Positions 47,476 through 55,000 of a DNA stretch of 64,000 bases are shown one piece after another. Position 1 is the stretch's first letter. Each line of letters opens with the position of its first letter. The position numbers were made by a program, and so were the translations under genes. The stretch lies in the NCBI GenBank assembly GCA_977016875.1, contig CDRNST010000104.1, forward strand, positions 2,728,001 through 2,792,000. Direction: 5' to 3'. The stretch is from Pavona decussata. Taxonomy: Eukaryota. Below the pieces are notes generated by a model that had not been told where the DNA came from, searched no databases, and was given only the letters and a program-made list of their open reading frames with translations.

Positions 47476-48701
47476 AACAGAAGGCGCGCGATATGGGGCG
47501 CTCTCTGATGCCCTATCCTCCACCTAAGCCGCACCACTGTTTCCTCAGAAACGTATCCCTTTACCTAATTTGCGATAGGGTGCGGATGTAATATTAAATT
47601 TTGAAGGTCAATTTCGAGCGGGGTTATACACATATTCCGGGTTTGTCCACCCCCCCCCCCCCACCCCACCACCACCACCACAATCAACATGGCGTCAGAA
47701 ACTGTGAAACGGTTTGTTCAGTTTTATTCTTGGTGAATAAGGTGCTAAACCCCAAAGTACGCAATATATAGAAATGAAAGAGGGATCCTTGTCGTATTTG
47801 TAAAGACACTGGATCTACGGATACTGGTACTTATTTTAAACTCGCGCGTAGCGTGCAGTACTTTTGTAAATTAGTGAAAAATAAACTTTATTCTGTTCAA
47901 TAGATAACCACGCGACAGATGAACGTGTGAATATATACCAAAATAAAAAATGCGAAAAAAACTACACAGAGTAAACTCTAAGTTCAAGAACTTGACGAAA
48001 AAACAGAGTGACGCAAGATTTTGTATGGAAAAATATTATCTGTAGTAACAAGGTTTTTCAAAACATATGCAACCGGCCAACCCCCGTAAAAGGAAGATTG
48101 GAGTCATTAGTCACTTGTCAAGAGGAAACGTTTCAATCAGAAACCTTCATATCTTTGAAGCGAGCATTTGCCGATGAAGGAAGGTTTAAGGTTCTAATCG
48201 ACAGGTCATCGGCTTTACGACATCATTTCACGCAGCTAAACTGAAGTTAAAATCTTTCAAACATGATGTGCACAGGGTTCAAACATGTCAACCTTAAAAA
48301 ACCGTGCTCCCTTTCTTCCCTATTTCTCTACTGTTACTCAGCACTTTGAGGTCGCGTTCGATTGAACGTAGTCAGGAGGGTAATGGGCTCCCGCCGTAGT
48401 ACAGAATTATGATGAACGAAATAGCCTCTACATTTCTCTTTTTAGGTACATTTAGGAGGGTGTATCCGTACAGTTTTAATGACACCTGATTTTTTATTTA
48501 GGTATTTTCTGTGCCAGTAACTCTTAAACCTCGTATGGGGGATTTTTAGTAGCGTTTACGCATCCCCGAATAAGACTAATCGCATGCAGGAATCTCCCGG
48601 TCATTACAGTTGGATGGAAAAAGAGGGACACGTCTGAGGATTTCCATCTTTTCCGAAACCTTTTCACTTGAATTAGCTGTAACAATGAAATTATTGTTAG
48701 A

Positions 48702-48894
48702 GAAAAATTTGTTTCTTGATCCTGTCATTATATCAAACAAAAAGGTTTCGTTTTCAGGATCGAAAATTTATGCTCAAGCACAAGCTTTCGATTCCCTCAC
48801 GGAATCTTTGTCAAGTGGACAAAGATTCCGTGAGGGAATCGAAAGCTTGTGCTTGAACATAAATTTCCGATCCTGAAAACGAAACCTTTTTGTT
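48702..48894 (-). mobile_element. Near-perfect 77-bp-arm palindrome interpreted as a minimal Penelope-type insertion with a U3-A8 hammerhead
   Basis: Arms 48736-48812 / 48818-48894 (2 mismatches); minus strand cac-TTGACAA-a-gattcc-gtga-g-ggaatc-GAAA-GCTT-gtg; flanking ttgttaga direct repeat (48694, 48890). Confidence 0.7.
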
Positions 48895-49066
48895 AGAATA
48901 AAAATTTTTAACCGAGAATTCCGGGTTTTGACGAAAGATGATGATCCCTCGATAGTCAATGACAACTGAGCTAATCAGATTCGAGTATTCGCGATAGACC
49001 ACAGTCTACATGGCAATGAGCTAAAACTAAGAGCGAGAAAAGAGCGCGCGTAGCTGACTAGCTTCA

Positions 49067-52000
49067 TTAGATCGGTTTTAACACGCTTGTGGCCGAATTA
49101 ATCGAGTGCGTCAACAAAGAAATTTCCTTTTTAACTACTTCCCAGTTTCCCGATTTTCTCGCCATATTCACGGCATGGTTTACCCGCGGGAAGTAGATAC
49201 CATCGTACAGGTTTGAGAGGTTTGGTCCATAAATAACATGCCTCAACTGTTTAAGATCGTTCGCTTCCACTGTTTGAATAAACGCTTTCTCTAGCTGCAT
49301 CATTTGATCGTTTACGACGCGGAAATCCTCTGGACCCATTTTCATCTTGTTTTGTTCAAACTCGCGCGACATTGCCACAAAATTCTTCACAGCGCGCGAG
49401 AATGCAGTCATATCGATATCATGTGCTTTAAAATGAGCGTTTGTCTCCAGTATTTGTGCTTTGGACTGTAATAACTGTCCATAGGTTGTCGTATTGAAAG
49501 GCAACAAAGCCGAGTCCGATATTTTGAGCAGAAAAATTCCCGCGTATTTCGCCACAGCCAGATGGGTTTTGAACTCGGGATCGATAAAAGTTTTAATCCA
49601 ATAATACGTGTCGTGTACAGAATGATAAACGGGGTAAGATCGCCTTATTCCGTACACCCCTCCGAAGATATACGACCAATCAGCCGAGGAAACTCCGATG
49701 AAGTGATAGAAGGCAACATAATCGCTGCCGAAAGCTAGATTGTCACAGACTGGTGAGCCGTTGACATTCTTCGTAACATCCCTCTCCAGCATCACATCAT
49801 ACATGCTTCTACAAGCGTGCGAAACTGTGGGATCACAAACTTCTTTGGTTAAGGAAACAGCAACGTCTTGAAGCAAAGGATTCGCGTCAACGTTAATGCT
49901 AAAGTTACCGTTTACAGCCACGTCCATGTTAAGATACGCAACTGCTCGATCTTGGAGAATCTGAGCATTCTCTTCTACCCATTCGGCTGACCCAACAACA
50001 AAAATCTCTTCTGCATCCCAACTGCAAAGCATTATGGTCCGGCGCGGCCTCCATCCCGCTTTCAGCAGTTCACCCAAACCACGTGACACCTCCATGAGCA
50101 CAGACGTGCCGCTGACCGCATCAGCTCCGCCGAACACCCAAGCGTCTCGGTGGTTTCCCATGAGCACATAGCGGTCGGGTTCCTCCTTACCCCTGATCTG
50201 ACCAATCACGTTGTAAATGGTTCTTCTCTCCAGTTTATTATTTACCTCCATTCTCAGCGTAAGAGACTCGTCTTCAAACCCAGGCCCCAGGTGATATGTG
50301 AGTTCCAGGCCGCCTTGCCATTCCTTGGGTGCTGCAGGCCCTTCAGAGAGAAAATTGGCATCAAATGTACTTAACCAGGAGCCCATGACTAGGAGCCTGT
50401 ATCTGGATTAGCTGCTTGAGTCAACCCGCTTTCCCGACTAGTATAAGAATTTTCATTGTTATGCTGCACCTTTATGGCATGGCACACGCGGAGATACTAA
50501 GATATGGGCAAAAATAATTTCCGCGCATGCGAAGAAGTGCAACAGGATGGAGGTTTCCGTCGCTGAGGGGAGGTGGGTGAGGCAAAAGGGAAACTCTGAA
50601 CAGACCTCTCGGGACATAAACGCATATTAGAACGATTACAAGCATAGAGGGCGTATAAATACTATGCTTAATACCTATGGGAATTACGAAGGTCTCAAGA
50701 GGAAATGTGAGCTAATTTATGCAGCGCGCGAGACCATTTCGAAGCAATCATACCAATGAAAATATTGGCAGACCTTTTCAGTTTAGCCATTGAACAGCAA
50801 CAAAACAGTGAAGGTTGTTTGTGTTCATAGTGGTGTACAAAGTAACTTTGGGTCGGTAGTTTTCTGTTGTTAGACCAATGTTACAAACTATTGTTACTGG
50901 ACGGTCTTGGTAGTTGGTAGTAAGCTATACTTACCTTTCATTCGTCGCAAAATCTCCTTCGCATCCCCAAAAGACATGGCCATAGAAGGAATTGTGGGTA
51001 ATCCACTCTGGTTGAGTGGCTGTCGGTATATTCCGTCAACAGCGGGGAAGCCTGGGGTGAGTGGATCTCCAGGCCCCTTCTCGCCCATAGCTGATCCACG
51101 CTGCATGCCGGAGTCTGGGAGCCACCAAGAATTTGGGAATGTGTTTTGGGGTCCTTCAGGAGCAAACTGCGCAGGGTCCGTATATATAATGGCCCCGGAT
51201 GCGCCGTGTGAGGCAGCATTGTAGACCTTGCAAACGAAAAGAAGCGCATTGTGTGATGTTTTCTCAAACATGTTATCTCAGTAGAGAGAAAAACTGGCCA
51301 GAAAAGGCGCGCGAAAAAAGAAAACAAAAGAAATCATTTGTTATTCACAATGCTTGAAATAAACATGGCATTGTGGAGTGTGCGTGTGTGTACGGAGGGG
51401 GGGGGGGTGTGCGTGTGTGTACGGAGGGGGGGGGGTGAATGAGGGATGGGAGAGGATGCCACGAGGAGACTCGTTGTGTCCCAAAGCTTTTGACCAGGAT
51501 TAGAAGAGGAGGGAGGGTGGTTATTTTAATAAAGATGTTTCTACGATTTCAGTAAGTCACCAGCAACTGAATGCTAGCTTAGTCAACGAGAAGTAACCAC
51601 TGTGTTTCAACAACTACAAGACAGCTTATGTCAAAGTGACAGAGCACATCATTAGTCGTCAACAAACTCTCACACTCTTGAGTCTACAAGCGTAGCAGGT
51701 AACGGCGAACCATTAGGGCAACATAAGTAAAACCCTGCACCCTGTCCGTACTGTCCAGTACAAATATGTTTTTGGCGATTCAAAGTGACAATGCCCCTTT
51801 AATTATTCCTGTAAAACCTTGAATACCCTATTTTTCTTTCCCGCATGGTTGTAAACCACACACAAATACCTTTCATCAAATTATTCTAAAATTGTAAATA
51901 CGAACTCCTCCACATGAGGAAAATACTCACCAACACCCAACAGGGAGATATCTAGTGAATTCTACAAGCCAATTTTTTTTTAACAATTTTTTGCGTGACA

Positions 52001-55000
52001 AAATGGCAGAACTTGAAAAATAATGCTGGCAACTCATTTTCGTGCTGACCATCCGTAACCAAAGCCACTCAGTGATAAATAGTTTCAGTGTACTATCGTT
52101 GTAACGCTTCAATAACTTATGTAAACTATGATTTTAGGTTTCCGTCGGTGTGACTGCGACTATGAGCTTTTCAAAGTGCCGCAAGGATAGCGGACAAAGC
52201 TCCTTAAAGAATGGTTCCTCCTTTTGCTACAGCGCATGCGTTCCGCGCATCTCGGAATGGACCAAGAAACTCTGGTTTCTTAAGGACGATCCATGCTATT
52301 TCAAAGGTGTTTTTGAGCGGCTTGTGACTATGTGGAAAAAGAGGATCTTAGCAAGGACTATTGAAATCGAATTAGAAAACAGGGGTAACCACGCATTTTC
52401 ATACACAATTAAGCCTTACTTTGGAAAAAATGCCATGTATTTTAAAGTTTTGTTTAGAATTGTTGTTACTTACAAGTTATCTCTGAGAAATGCGTGGTTA
52501 CTCTCAATGTTGCAAACATCTGCTTTTTCCCTTTTGTCGTAAATAACGCACAAAAGACATCTATGTTAGGTGGGACTGTCATTAAAAACCAGTCTTCAGC
52601 AAACGCTGTATCACAAATTTATATCACATACCTTATTCCCCCTAAATACTCTTCCTTGACGAATGATAACAATTTTACCCTTGACTGACACACCCATGCC
52701 TTTCAGCTTTTTAAAATCCTTTTCAGTTCCAAAGTTGGCGTACACGACCTCTCCCTTTACCACCCCACTGGGGGAGTAGCCGAGGAAGACTGGCATTCCT
52801 TTGGCTTTTCGTTCATCTTCGCGTAAAACCTGTTGATTTGAAAAAAGAATGTTATTGATGGCCTAGGATGATCAGGTCCTCCACCACTGCCGAGTATAAA
52901 AATCGTACTTTTAGCGCCGGGAAAAGTCGCATCACAGGTAAGCTGTACACCGCCGTCCACAGTTCTTTATGCACCATTTTAATTATAACAGGGACGTGTT
53001 GCCCAGAAGGACAAGGAGCAGTGACAAACTTAGACTCCCGTCTGTAAAAATTAGAATGTACGAAAAAAGCCTTTTTTATCTGGCTGTGTAATTTTTAATC
53101 AGAATTTTAATCAGATTTAGATTTTTAGTTTTTACTTTATATGACATTTTATAGCTATTTTTATTGTACTTAATTATCATTATTATTTCCACTCAATTCA
53201 GTTTATTATATAGGGCCTCTATGGATAGCAGTTTTTATCTTGTACAAAAACTGAAGGAATTACCCTATTAAAATAAAGGTTTCTTATCTTATCTTATTTT
53301 CCTCCACTTTGGTTTCAAGCATAGCACTGGCTAAATTCATTCATCCTTCGTTATCGACGCATAAAGACGAATATTTCTCCTACTACTACAGCATCATTTA
53401 AAACTCATTTTAGCACAGTAAAACCGATGATGAGGATATAAATTTACACTTGTCGCTCTTTTTACCGCAACGTTTACTGATCGAGCACAAGTTGTAGTTT
53501 AAATCGTGTGTGCAAACTAGCGGCGATTTCAGCCCGATTCATCGCCGCGATAACACAGGGTTTCGAACATGTTTAACATTTGTTGGAGGATTTGTCAGAA
53601 AAAGGAAGAGTGATACCACGCTGGCAGCTGGTTCATACACGTGTAGACGCTCTTTGGGCGGCTTCACGCATTCATTCCCTTGGGAGAGGAATTGATGCGT
53701 GACGAGCCTAAAGAACGTCCGAGAAGGAGGCTAATACACCTGCGATGTGAAACACGCACGAGAAAAATTGCAGAGAAGTGCTAGAGGAGTTGCACCAAAG
53801 ATCGCATTTGTAAACGGGGCTTATTAAAGGGACTATGTCACCCCAGGCGCATGCGAGCGTTGATGAGAAGCACTTTAAAATCGTTGGCACGACTTTTTCA
53901 AATACCGTAACTGGTTTGAACCCAGGAGTCATGCCATAAGTACGTAAATTATGATCATCCGGGTGAGTGTAGTCCTGAGAACGACTCAATCTGGAAAGCT
54001 GGTTTACTAACTAAGAACAAAGGCCACTCAACAGTTGCCTACAACTACAATTAAGCGAGTAACTAACGTGGAAAGTTGATACAAGTTTATTTCTACTTGC
54101 CTTTTCATCGGGGTGTGACTCAAACACAACCTTGCCATCTCGGTGAATTTCTACTCTGCTCCGCTTTGAATCTTGATGCGGAAAATTCATTAAGACATCG
54201 TACTTTGCCATTTCTACATGATCAAATCCATAACTTCGCCATTTCGCCTCAATGTGACGCGCCAAATCGTTATTCCGTTTGGAACTGGCAAAATGAGGCT
54301 CTTGAGAAAAATACCTGTGTTATACAAAATCCATTATTATCCTTTCTCAACTTCCGCGGAATTTAACCTCCCTCCCCCTCCCCCCTTGAAAATAAGTCCT
54401 TCCTCCCCACCATTCCAATTCATATGCAAATGTTTAGGCTGTTTGTTAGTGTCAAGCACAACCAATTGAAGACGTACTGAAATAAGACTGTCCGAAAAAA
54501 TGCCCTGAAACTAAATATATTCCGAATATTCACGGCAGATCTGGCAATAATTTTTATTCCATCAGTAATTTTAAAGGATTTCTGACACCGAGCGAAAGAT
54601 TATCTCTCTACCACATCTGTAAAAAATATCGACTTGTGTTCAAACGACCTTACTCATATCCCTATCAAATTGTTTCCATCTAGAGTAAGTAATCTATTAA
54701 ACGTCAATAACACCGAGAACGCTGAGAAAAACCTCTCGGAGCAAAGACGAGAACCAACAACAAACTCAAACCCGGGCCACACTGATGGGAGGCGAGTGCT
54801 CTCACCACCGTGCAACTCCCGCTGCCCCTTTCTCTCATGAAAATAATAATTAATAATTTAATAATTTATTACTTATTCGGCGCAAATATCTATATGAATA
54901 TATTCAAATGCGCCTTACAAGTTACAGTAAAATAATAATAAAATAATAAAACTAAAATAAAAACGGGTCATTAGCTGAGTTAAAGAAAGAAAAAAGAAAA

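Follow-up and report, generated by a model that had tools for sequence, protein, structure and literature searches.

Insertions of Penelope-like elements (PLEs) show strong 5' truncation; a second copy, inverted and likewise 5'-truncated, often lies right beside the first, and a tail of 30-40 bp is often present, at one end only (Craig et al. 2021, PMC8557442). The purified PLE protein of the anole cleaves and extends both DNA strands, and reverse transcription begins at two internal start sites, the tail being the stretch between them (PMC11167929). A hairpin at positions 48695-48897 of a window of Pavona decussata DNA (the whole stretch of 64,000 nucleotides (nt) of contig CDRNST010000104.1 that was analysed) was characterized together with its repeat family and with the peptidase gene behind whose stop codon it lies. 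The interval is probably a PLE-type retro-insertion of a short repeat with a motif of the minimal hammerhead class, placed in transcribed sequence 3' of the peptidase coding region.

In the minimal hammerhead ribozymes (HHRs) of PLEs, helix II is long and helix I short (2-5 bp), a single base stays unpaired between positions 9 and 10.1, the G10.1-C11.1 pair is conserved, positions 15.2-16.2 are palindromic and loop 3 is missing; these ribozymes escape canonical searches (Cervera & de la Pena 2014, PMC4209133). A natural core covariant, U3-A8, is present in about 1,300 copies in the Cercyon PLEs of Schistosoma mansoni, and the published PLE minimal hammerheads were inactive as monomers and weak as dimers (PMC4209133). 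In one stony coral, thousands of minimal hammerhead motifs have been reported (Cervera & de la Pena 2020, PMC7229834). Both the insertion geometry (described 2006-2024) and the U3-A8 minimal motif (reported 2014) of the present locus are of known kinds.

Insertion geometry of the hairpin and its repeat family

The plus strand holds an inverted repeat with arms of 80 nt each (48733-48812 and 48818-48897), 96% complementary and separated by a loop of 5 nt. Positions 48736-48812 paired with 48818-48894 form an uninterrupted stem of 77 bp past the peptidase stop, confirming a preliminary description of this DNA made from the sequence alone. The sole two non-Watson-Crick positions of the stem (48867/48763 and 48857/48773) are C-A on the plus strand and G-U on the minus strand, that of the peptidase, also as described. 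Folded as minus-strand RNA, the hairpin had a predicted energy of -140.4 kcal/mol, with z = -22 against shuffled sequences. Rfam microRNA families (MIR8007, MIR7994 and others) matched it below their gathering scores (78 bits against 195, 69 against 100); identity as a microRNA precursor was rejected, the subthreshold matches being generic to long hairpins and present on both strands.

The two arms are copies of one repeat. With BLAST, 48818-48695 aligned to positions 139-265 of a unit of 265 nt, and the window copy is a pair whose partners are truncated at unit positions 139 and 145; because these points are nearly equal, the palindrome at 48695-48897 is nearly loop-less. The one-sided tail previously described is present, is conserved in the family next to one arm only, and belongs to the copy in the sense of the messenger RNA (mRNA); its length proved to be 38-39 nt (48695-48732) instead of 25-34 nt.

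The genome searched was that of the stony coral itself (602 Mb). With the palindrome as query, matches were obtained at 45 or more places; a 27-nt pattern drawn from the tail gave 106 matches, versus none for its reversed control, and a pattern for the motif region 172. The copy number of the repeat in this genome is roughly 100-250. Once the single-arm copies were aligned, the arm was seen to run inward into a common body of 140 nt and outward into a conserved extension of 38-39 nt. Read on the minus strand of the window, the unit (reference copy L028:1363-1627) is 265 nt long and non-coding, with a fixed 5' end, a stable internal hairpin of 18 bp at positions 77-133, three further hairpins, and the tail at 227-265. 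Because nine copies begin at unit position 1-2 and the sequence further out is unrelated between loci, the unit is, as far as 42 loci show, a short non-coding element and not the terminus of a longer one.

Insertion geometry was taken over 40 distinct loci, the first 22 of which were picked with the palindrome query and are thus biased to pairs. The 5' ends of the copies were spread over unit positions 1-225. Head-to-head pairs, joined at their 5' ends with the 3' ends outward, were found at no fewer than 15 of the 40 loci; among the 19 distinct loci for which the tail was the only selection criterion, 5-7 held such pairs. In nearly all pairs one copy extends to unit position 263-265, tail included, and its partner stops at 225-233; in the pair L010 the tail is on neither copy. 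Clear target-site duplications (TSDs) of 9-15 bp were present in 13 of 30 family copies. The proposal of a minimal PLE-type insertion is supported by this variable 5' truncation, by the head-to-head pairs with one tail and by the TSDs. The 5' ends are concentrated beside the 18-bp hairpin, at its 3' foot, namely at unit positions 123-126 and 137-153 (the latter with about 17 of 63), which suggests that reverse transcription tends to halt at this hairpin.

Regarding possible sources of the enzymatic machinery, GIY-YIG domains gave 933 first-look candidates in the genome, and the 150 that were scored were all above the cut-off, giving at least 150 matches. Many sit within open frames that span 400-1041 codons and are arranged as inverted pairs with a spacing of 1-7 kb (C179:254191/258096 and C67:976013/980246, for instance), and these data suggest that the genome holds many young endonuclease-bearing PLEs. 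By eye, no GIY-YIG place was less than 5 kb from a motif place among the matches listed.

Two other kinds of mobile element were considered for this geometry. A miniature inverted-repeat transposable element (MITE) or fold-back DNA transposon, in which the arms would be the terminal inverted repeats of a cut-and-paste element, agrees with a near-perfect 80-nt inverted repeat in many genomic copies and with Rfam matches to MITE-like plant MIR hairpin families, all of them below gathering scores. It does not agree with the fact that most copies are one-armed and run into the common 140-nt body with its fixed 5' end, nor with truncation points that vary, TSDs of 9-15 bp and inner ends of pairs that differ by locus; a cut-and-paste element is excluded by arms that occur singly and share a body, by a tail confined to one side and by duplications that vary in length, and this origin is regarded as extremely improbable. 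The other copies of the family showed one-sided tails and PLE marks, not symmetric terminal inverted repeats devoid of any PLE association. The probability of a short interspersed nuclear element (SINE), mobilised by a long interspersed nuclear element (LINE) and inverted by twin priming, is considered to be slightly lower still, even if the family has the short length, the lack of coding capacity, the variable TSDs and the 5' truncation of such a retroelement: its 3' end is without poly(A) or simple repeat, its alternative 3' ends, with and without the tail, lie 35-40 nt apart, which is a PLE hallmark, and its arms duplicate the same part of the unit, where twin priming would give adjoining parts. 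LINE twin priming is excluded by these same-part arms and by the missing poly(A) end.

Under the preferred reading of a PLE-type retro-insertion, a PLE endonuclease would have cut both DNA strands, and both 3' ends would have primed reverse transcription on the element RNA. One strand would have been primed at the distal start site, with the 38-39-nt tail included, and the other at the proximal site, giving a tail-less copy. Both complementary DNAs (cDNAs) would have ended immediately 3' of the internal 18-bp hairpin, at unit positions 139 and 145, and the head-to-head joining of their 5' ends would have produced the near-perfect palindrome. Integration would have taken place 170 nt beyond the stop codon of an expressed M28 peptidase gene, the tailed copy being in mRNA sense, and read-through peptidase transcripts would carry the 77-bp stem. 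For the 265-nt unit we infer this double-priming mechanism and a PLE partner.

Other observations concern the surroundings of the family copies. Segmental duplications, each carrying a copy of the element, were found at L048 and L062 (C63:741622 and C93:64451), 99% identical over 6 kb, and at L029 and L030 (C15:427501 and 470635), about 43 kb apart. A 5'-truncated insertion at L059 5887-6045 (junction ATCATCAAAGATTCC, TSD CATCAATTATCT) recurs at nine or more places beside a 619-codon open frame, among others at C82:590472, C132:1357408/1358603/1418296/1429553 and C403:60647/274542, and seems to have been copied together with a duplicated host gene or segment. Copies of the family are flanked by tRNA-like genes at L028 926-998, L019 535-606 and L020 2766-2837.

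The minimal hammerhead-like motif

The minus-strand letters of the motif at 48817-48779 were as previously written (Table 1). Its core letters are U4, G5 and A6, A9, G12, A13, A14 and A15.1, U16.1 and H17, accompanied by an unpaired A (48807) between 9 and 10.1, a G10.1-C11.1 pair and a palindromic GC at 15.2/16.2, and there is no loop 3. A relaxed descriptor, which detects the canonical hammerhead controls, gave this one match in the 64-kb window, against 0.04 matches by chance per simulated 64-kb window; given the helix II hairpin, random flanks meet the descriptor about 3e-7 of the time. A chance origin of the motif is unlikely.

A sister family, designated C, keeps the whole motif. It differs in N7 (C>A), in two letters of loop 2 and in helix I, in which CAC/GUG is replaced by UAC/GUA (third pair C-G to U-A) and a fourth pair, U-A, is added; from the sequences, this would be the pattern expected of a selected hammerhead. 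Helix II was invariant among the copies seen, for which the search patterns had fixed the core and helix II. The putative motif very probably belongs by descent to the PLE minimal hammerhead class and is probably inactive as a monomer. Inheritance from a PLE lineage is most likely. The U3-A8 hammerhead first proposed is thus upheld in its architecture, that of the PLE minimal class in a documented variant and unlikely to be due to chance, and is not upheld by an Rfam score or by a pile-up of 5' ends at the cut.

Copies of family C are located at C47:1090340-1090381, C53:606098-606139, C123:4553278-4553356 and about 35 more places; N7 is A in them, the loop reads GCGAA, and helix I is UUAC/GUAA. 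A head-to-head pair of copies 45 nt apart occurs at C123, and family C therefore forms fold-backs too.

At the window locus the complete motif is present in the sense copy only, the partner starting at unit position 145, without U3 and U4. Forcing helices I and II was predicted to cost +6.6 kcal/mol in a solo copy versus +53.5 kcal/mol in the palindrome. The sequestration of the motif by the stem, as suggested before, holds in this folding model, in which the 77-bp stem is predicted to bury the hammerhead motif.

Transcription into the element at the peptidase gene

The exon preceding the hairpin encodes the end of an M28 peptidase with the Pfam domains PF04389 (Peptidase_M28) and PF04253 (TFR_dimer). 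The stem begins 170 nt downstream of its stop, on the same strand, with its edge at 48897, in accordance with the distance and orientation given in the preliminary description.

Four RNA runs from four studies (X1, X2, X5 and X11) were aligned, as contigs only, to 47600-52600; these de Bruijn contigs carry no strand information and cannot cross the palindrome. They contained a splice joint (50339>50934, GT..AG on the minus strand) and introns without coverage, and the runs are therefore RNA. From the coding exon, contigs extend without a break to 48865 in X1 and to 48836 in X2, entering the proximal arm by 33 and 62 nt, respectively. On the far side, a contig of X2 covers 47693-48728, up to the tail, for which a convergent neighbour transcript is possible, the contig being strandless. 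In X11, a form with 3% divergence, the exon extends to 48876 and is followed by TAA, which takes the place of 48795-48875, by 48794-48767, and by ten non-genomic A's, that is, by a poly(A) end inside the distal copy, after 48767. In X5, the final six letters of the arm, with the tail after them, directly follow the flank at 48900, the junction having a 5-nt overlap, AAAAA. The forms of X5 and X11 have two explanations, deletion alleles arising from an unstable palindrome or a skipping of the RNA stem during library making; under both, the transcript from the peptidase side arrives at the element's far side. The element is located in the transcribed 3' region of the peptidase, as previously expected: contigs from the coding sequence enter the proximal arm, two reach the distal arm or the tail, and the transcript passes 48894. 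The only change in the locus-anchored part of the contigs was 48884 A>G (X2), of the wrong type for A-to-I editing on the mRNA strand.

Inverted repeats derived from transposable elements (TEs) in 3' untranslated regions (UTRs) serve as sources of double-stranded RNA (dsRNA), as substrates of ADAR and Dicer. The present hairpin is like them in that a transcribed 3' region here contains a duplex that is long, perfect and intramolecular. Dicing, dsRNA editing or palindrome instability could each be tested on such a perfect duplex of 77 bp in an expressed 3' region.

One contig of X2 is without 121 nt at 48170-48292, with non-canonical CC..AA ends and many differences from the reference; this gap is likely an indel between haplotypes or populations and not an intron. 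The coordinates of the features are detailed in Table 1.

Table 1. Features of the hairpin, the hammerhead-like motif and the neighbouring gene (positions in the window)
Feature	Position	Strand	Remarks
One-sided 3' tail of the sense copy	48695..48732	-	Unit ~227-265; ends CTCTAACA; adjoins one arm only in most family copies
Body of the sense 5'-truncated copy	48733..48817	-	Unit 139-226; 3' arm of the RNA hairpin plus loop CACUU; strand of the peptidase mRNA
Inverted, tail-less, 5'-truncated partner copy	48818..48897	+	Unit 145 to ~230; 5' arm of the hairpin in the mRNA
Minimal hammerhead-like motif, 39 nt	48817..48779	-	Only relaxed-descriptor match in the window
Helix I	48817-48815 / 48781-48779	-	3 bp
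Core UUGACAA	48814-48808	-	Followed by unpaired A at 48807
Helix II	48806-48801 / 48795-48790	-	6 bp, loop GUGAG
GAAA; G15.2 C16.2; U16.1, U17	48789-48786; 48785-48784; 48783-48782	-	Predicted cut between 48782 and 48781
Last coding exon, M28 / transferrin-receptor-like (NAALADase-type) peptidase	49067..50339	-	Stop 49067-49069; open reading frame of 439 codons
First AATAAA after the element, a possible poly(A) signal for the reference form	48493..48498	-	Pattern scan; presumed use

Weighing of the readings and comparison with known systems

Several results weigh against the reading of 48695-48897 as a PLE-type insertion with a minimal-hammerhead-class motif in the peptidase transcript. A clean TSD was not established for the window copy: the flanking direct repeat noted at the outset does exist (TTGTTAGA, or 78% over 23 nt), overlapping the element's own ends, and otherwise only AAATT is repeated. 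The search for a parent PLE, which comprised 20 loci anchored on the tail, taken with 6 kb of upstream sequence, a comparison of these upstream sequences with one another and a search for GIY-YIG domains, yielded no coding PLE sharing the 3' end of the unit among 42 loci, all of the short element. A transcript containing the entire stem is one that we infer, because the contigs cannot cross the palindrome and give no strand. Concerning the motif, U3-A8 replaces C3-G8, and C3-G8 was present in no copy seen. Helix I has only 3 bp, and in a subfamily B (helix I CAC/GUA) the third pair is broken and uncompensated, leaving 2 bp. When the unit is folded by prediction, the motif's 3' half (GAAAGCUUGUG) is paired within a different hairpin, and about 2 of 63 copy 5' ends fall at the predicted cut, versus about 0.7 expected, without pile-up. 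The conservation of the core and helix II in family C is partly by design, the search patterns having fixed both. The Rfam hammerhead models gave no score for the motif at E<=10 in scans of 601 nt and 71 nt and no match in the whole window or in eight family loci, and the motif does not reach the gathering threshold of Hammerhead_1 (RF00163), for which canonical copies of the genome score 39-54 bits; this null is no longer read against a ribozyme, because PLE minimal hammerheads escape canonical descriptors.

It could be argued from part of these results that the fold-back is of PLE type and its likeness to a hammerhead has no ribozyme meaning, the hairpin and its A-rich flanks being a module for binding and initiation by the PLE reverse transcriptase and the match a coincidence or a relic. 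The missing Rfam score, a helix I of 2-3 bp that is broken in subfamily B, the competing hairpin and the lack of an excess of 5' ends at the cut would all fit, as would the poor cleavage of published minimal HHRs even as dimers (PMC4209133) and the anole PLE, for whose insertion cleavage was not needed and whose protein-binding region overlaps the hammerhead (PMC11167929). Nevertheless, this alternative is unlikely, given that flanks would meet the descriptor beside such a hairpin so rarely (only about 3e-7), that every special feature of the PLE minimal HHRs is present, including the unpaired base and the palindromic 15.2-16.2, and that family C alters only N7, loop 2 and compensated pairs of helix I. 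The opposite view, that the U3-A8 hammerhead is competent, as a dimer or with the help of a PLE protein, the family being a solo, non-tandem, retrozyme-like parasite of coral PLEs, the stem a switch and the stem-skipping forms a product of processing or instability in vivo, is doubtful to a higher degree. If it were true, the 77-bp stem would hide a ribozyme and make the peptidase 3' UTR a dsRNA substrate, and the X5 and X11 forms, from two studies, would reflect processing or instability of the stem in vivo and not library artefacts.

The family was also compared with the non-LTR (LTR, long terminal repeat) retrozymes of corals (PMC7229834; bioRxiv 10.64898/2026.07.22.740005), which are likewise short (about 200-400 nt), structured and non-coding, contain a hammerhead motif and presumably rely on PLEs. 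Retrozymes are arrayed head to tail, have type I hammerheads that are canonical and efficient, and give circular RNAs, whereas the 265-nt family is mostly solo or inverted, has only a minimal U3-A8 motif, and its 5' end is fixed, 175 nt upstream from the putative cut. Identity as a non-LTR retrozyme, which would call for head-to-tail arrays with a hammerhead in every unit and for unit ends permuted via a circular RNA, was rejected, since the copies are mostly solo or inverted, nine share a 5' end at 1-2, and tandem pieces of the unit are only partial, in L026. Canonical type I hammerheads do occur in the genome, at least 50 of them above the Rfam cut-off and about 83,000 as rough first-look candidates, many in direct or inverted pairs 300-500 bp apart with a 6-bp helix I and an AGCU-type loop 3 (for example C206:723433-723477, C6:5145616/5146121 and C8:760893/761378). 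On comparison, no sequence similarity was found between these canonical hammerhead repeats and the 265-nt family.

In relation to the minimal HHRs of PLEs, represented by those of S. mansoni Cercyon (PMC4209133), the motif shares the type I topology, a 6-bp helix II, the unpaired base, G10.1-C11.1, a short helix I, U3-A8 and the palindromic 15.2-16.2 without loop 3, which implies use as a dimer, and is mostly found solo or in close pairs on opposite strands. It differs in its coral host, in a helix I of 3 bp and in belonging to a 265-nt non-coding unit instead of the mapped pseudo-LTR (pLTR) of a coding PLE. A cnidarian family would thereby join the minimal hammerheads of U3-A8 type, whose known source to date is a flatworm.

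With respect to PLE insertions (PMC8557442, PMC11167929), the family agrees in its variable 5' truncation, in head-to-head copies of which only one partner has the tail (here 38-39 nt), in a spacing of about 35-40 nt between the alternative 3' ends, in AT-rich targets and in TSDs of variable length. Unlike coding PLEs, the 265-nt unit encodes nothing, and unlike a typical PLE pair, both partners of the window copy are cut at nearly the same point, which makes it an almost loop-less palindrome. Together with its family, the hairpin leaves the existing knowledge of PLE insertion and minimal hammerheads unchanged; it would be a small, clean natural record of PLE integration, in which both ends prime, the start sites are 35-40 nt apart and reverse transcription stalls at an RNA hairpin.

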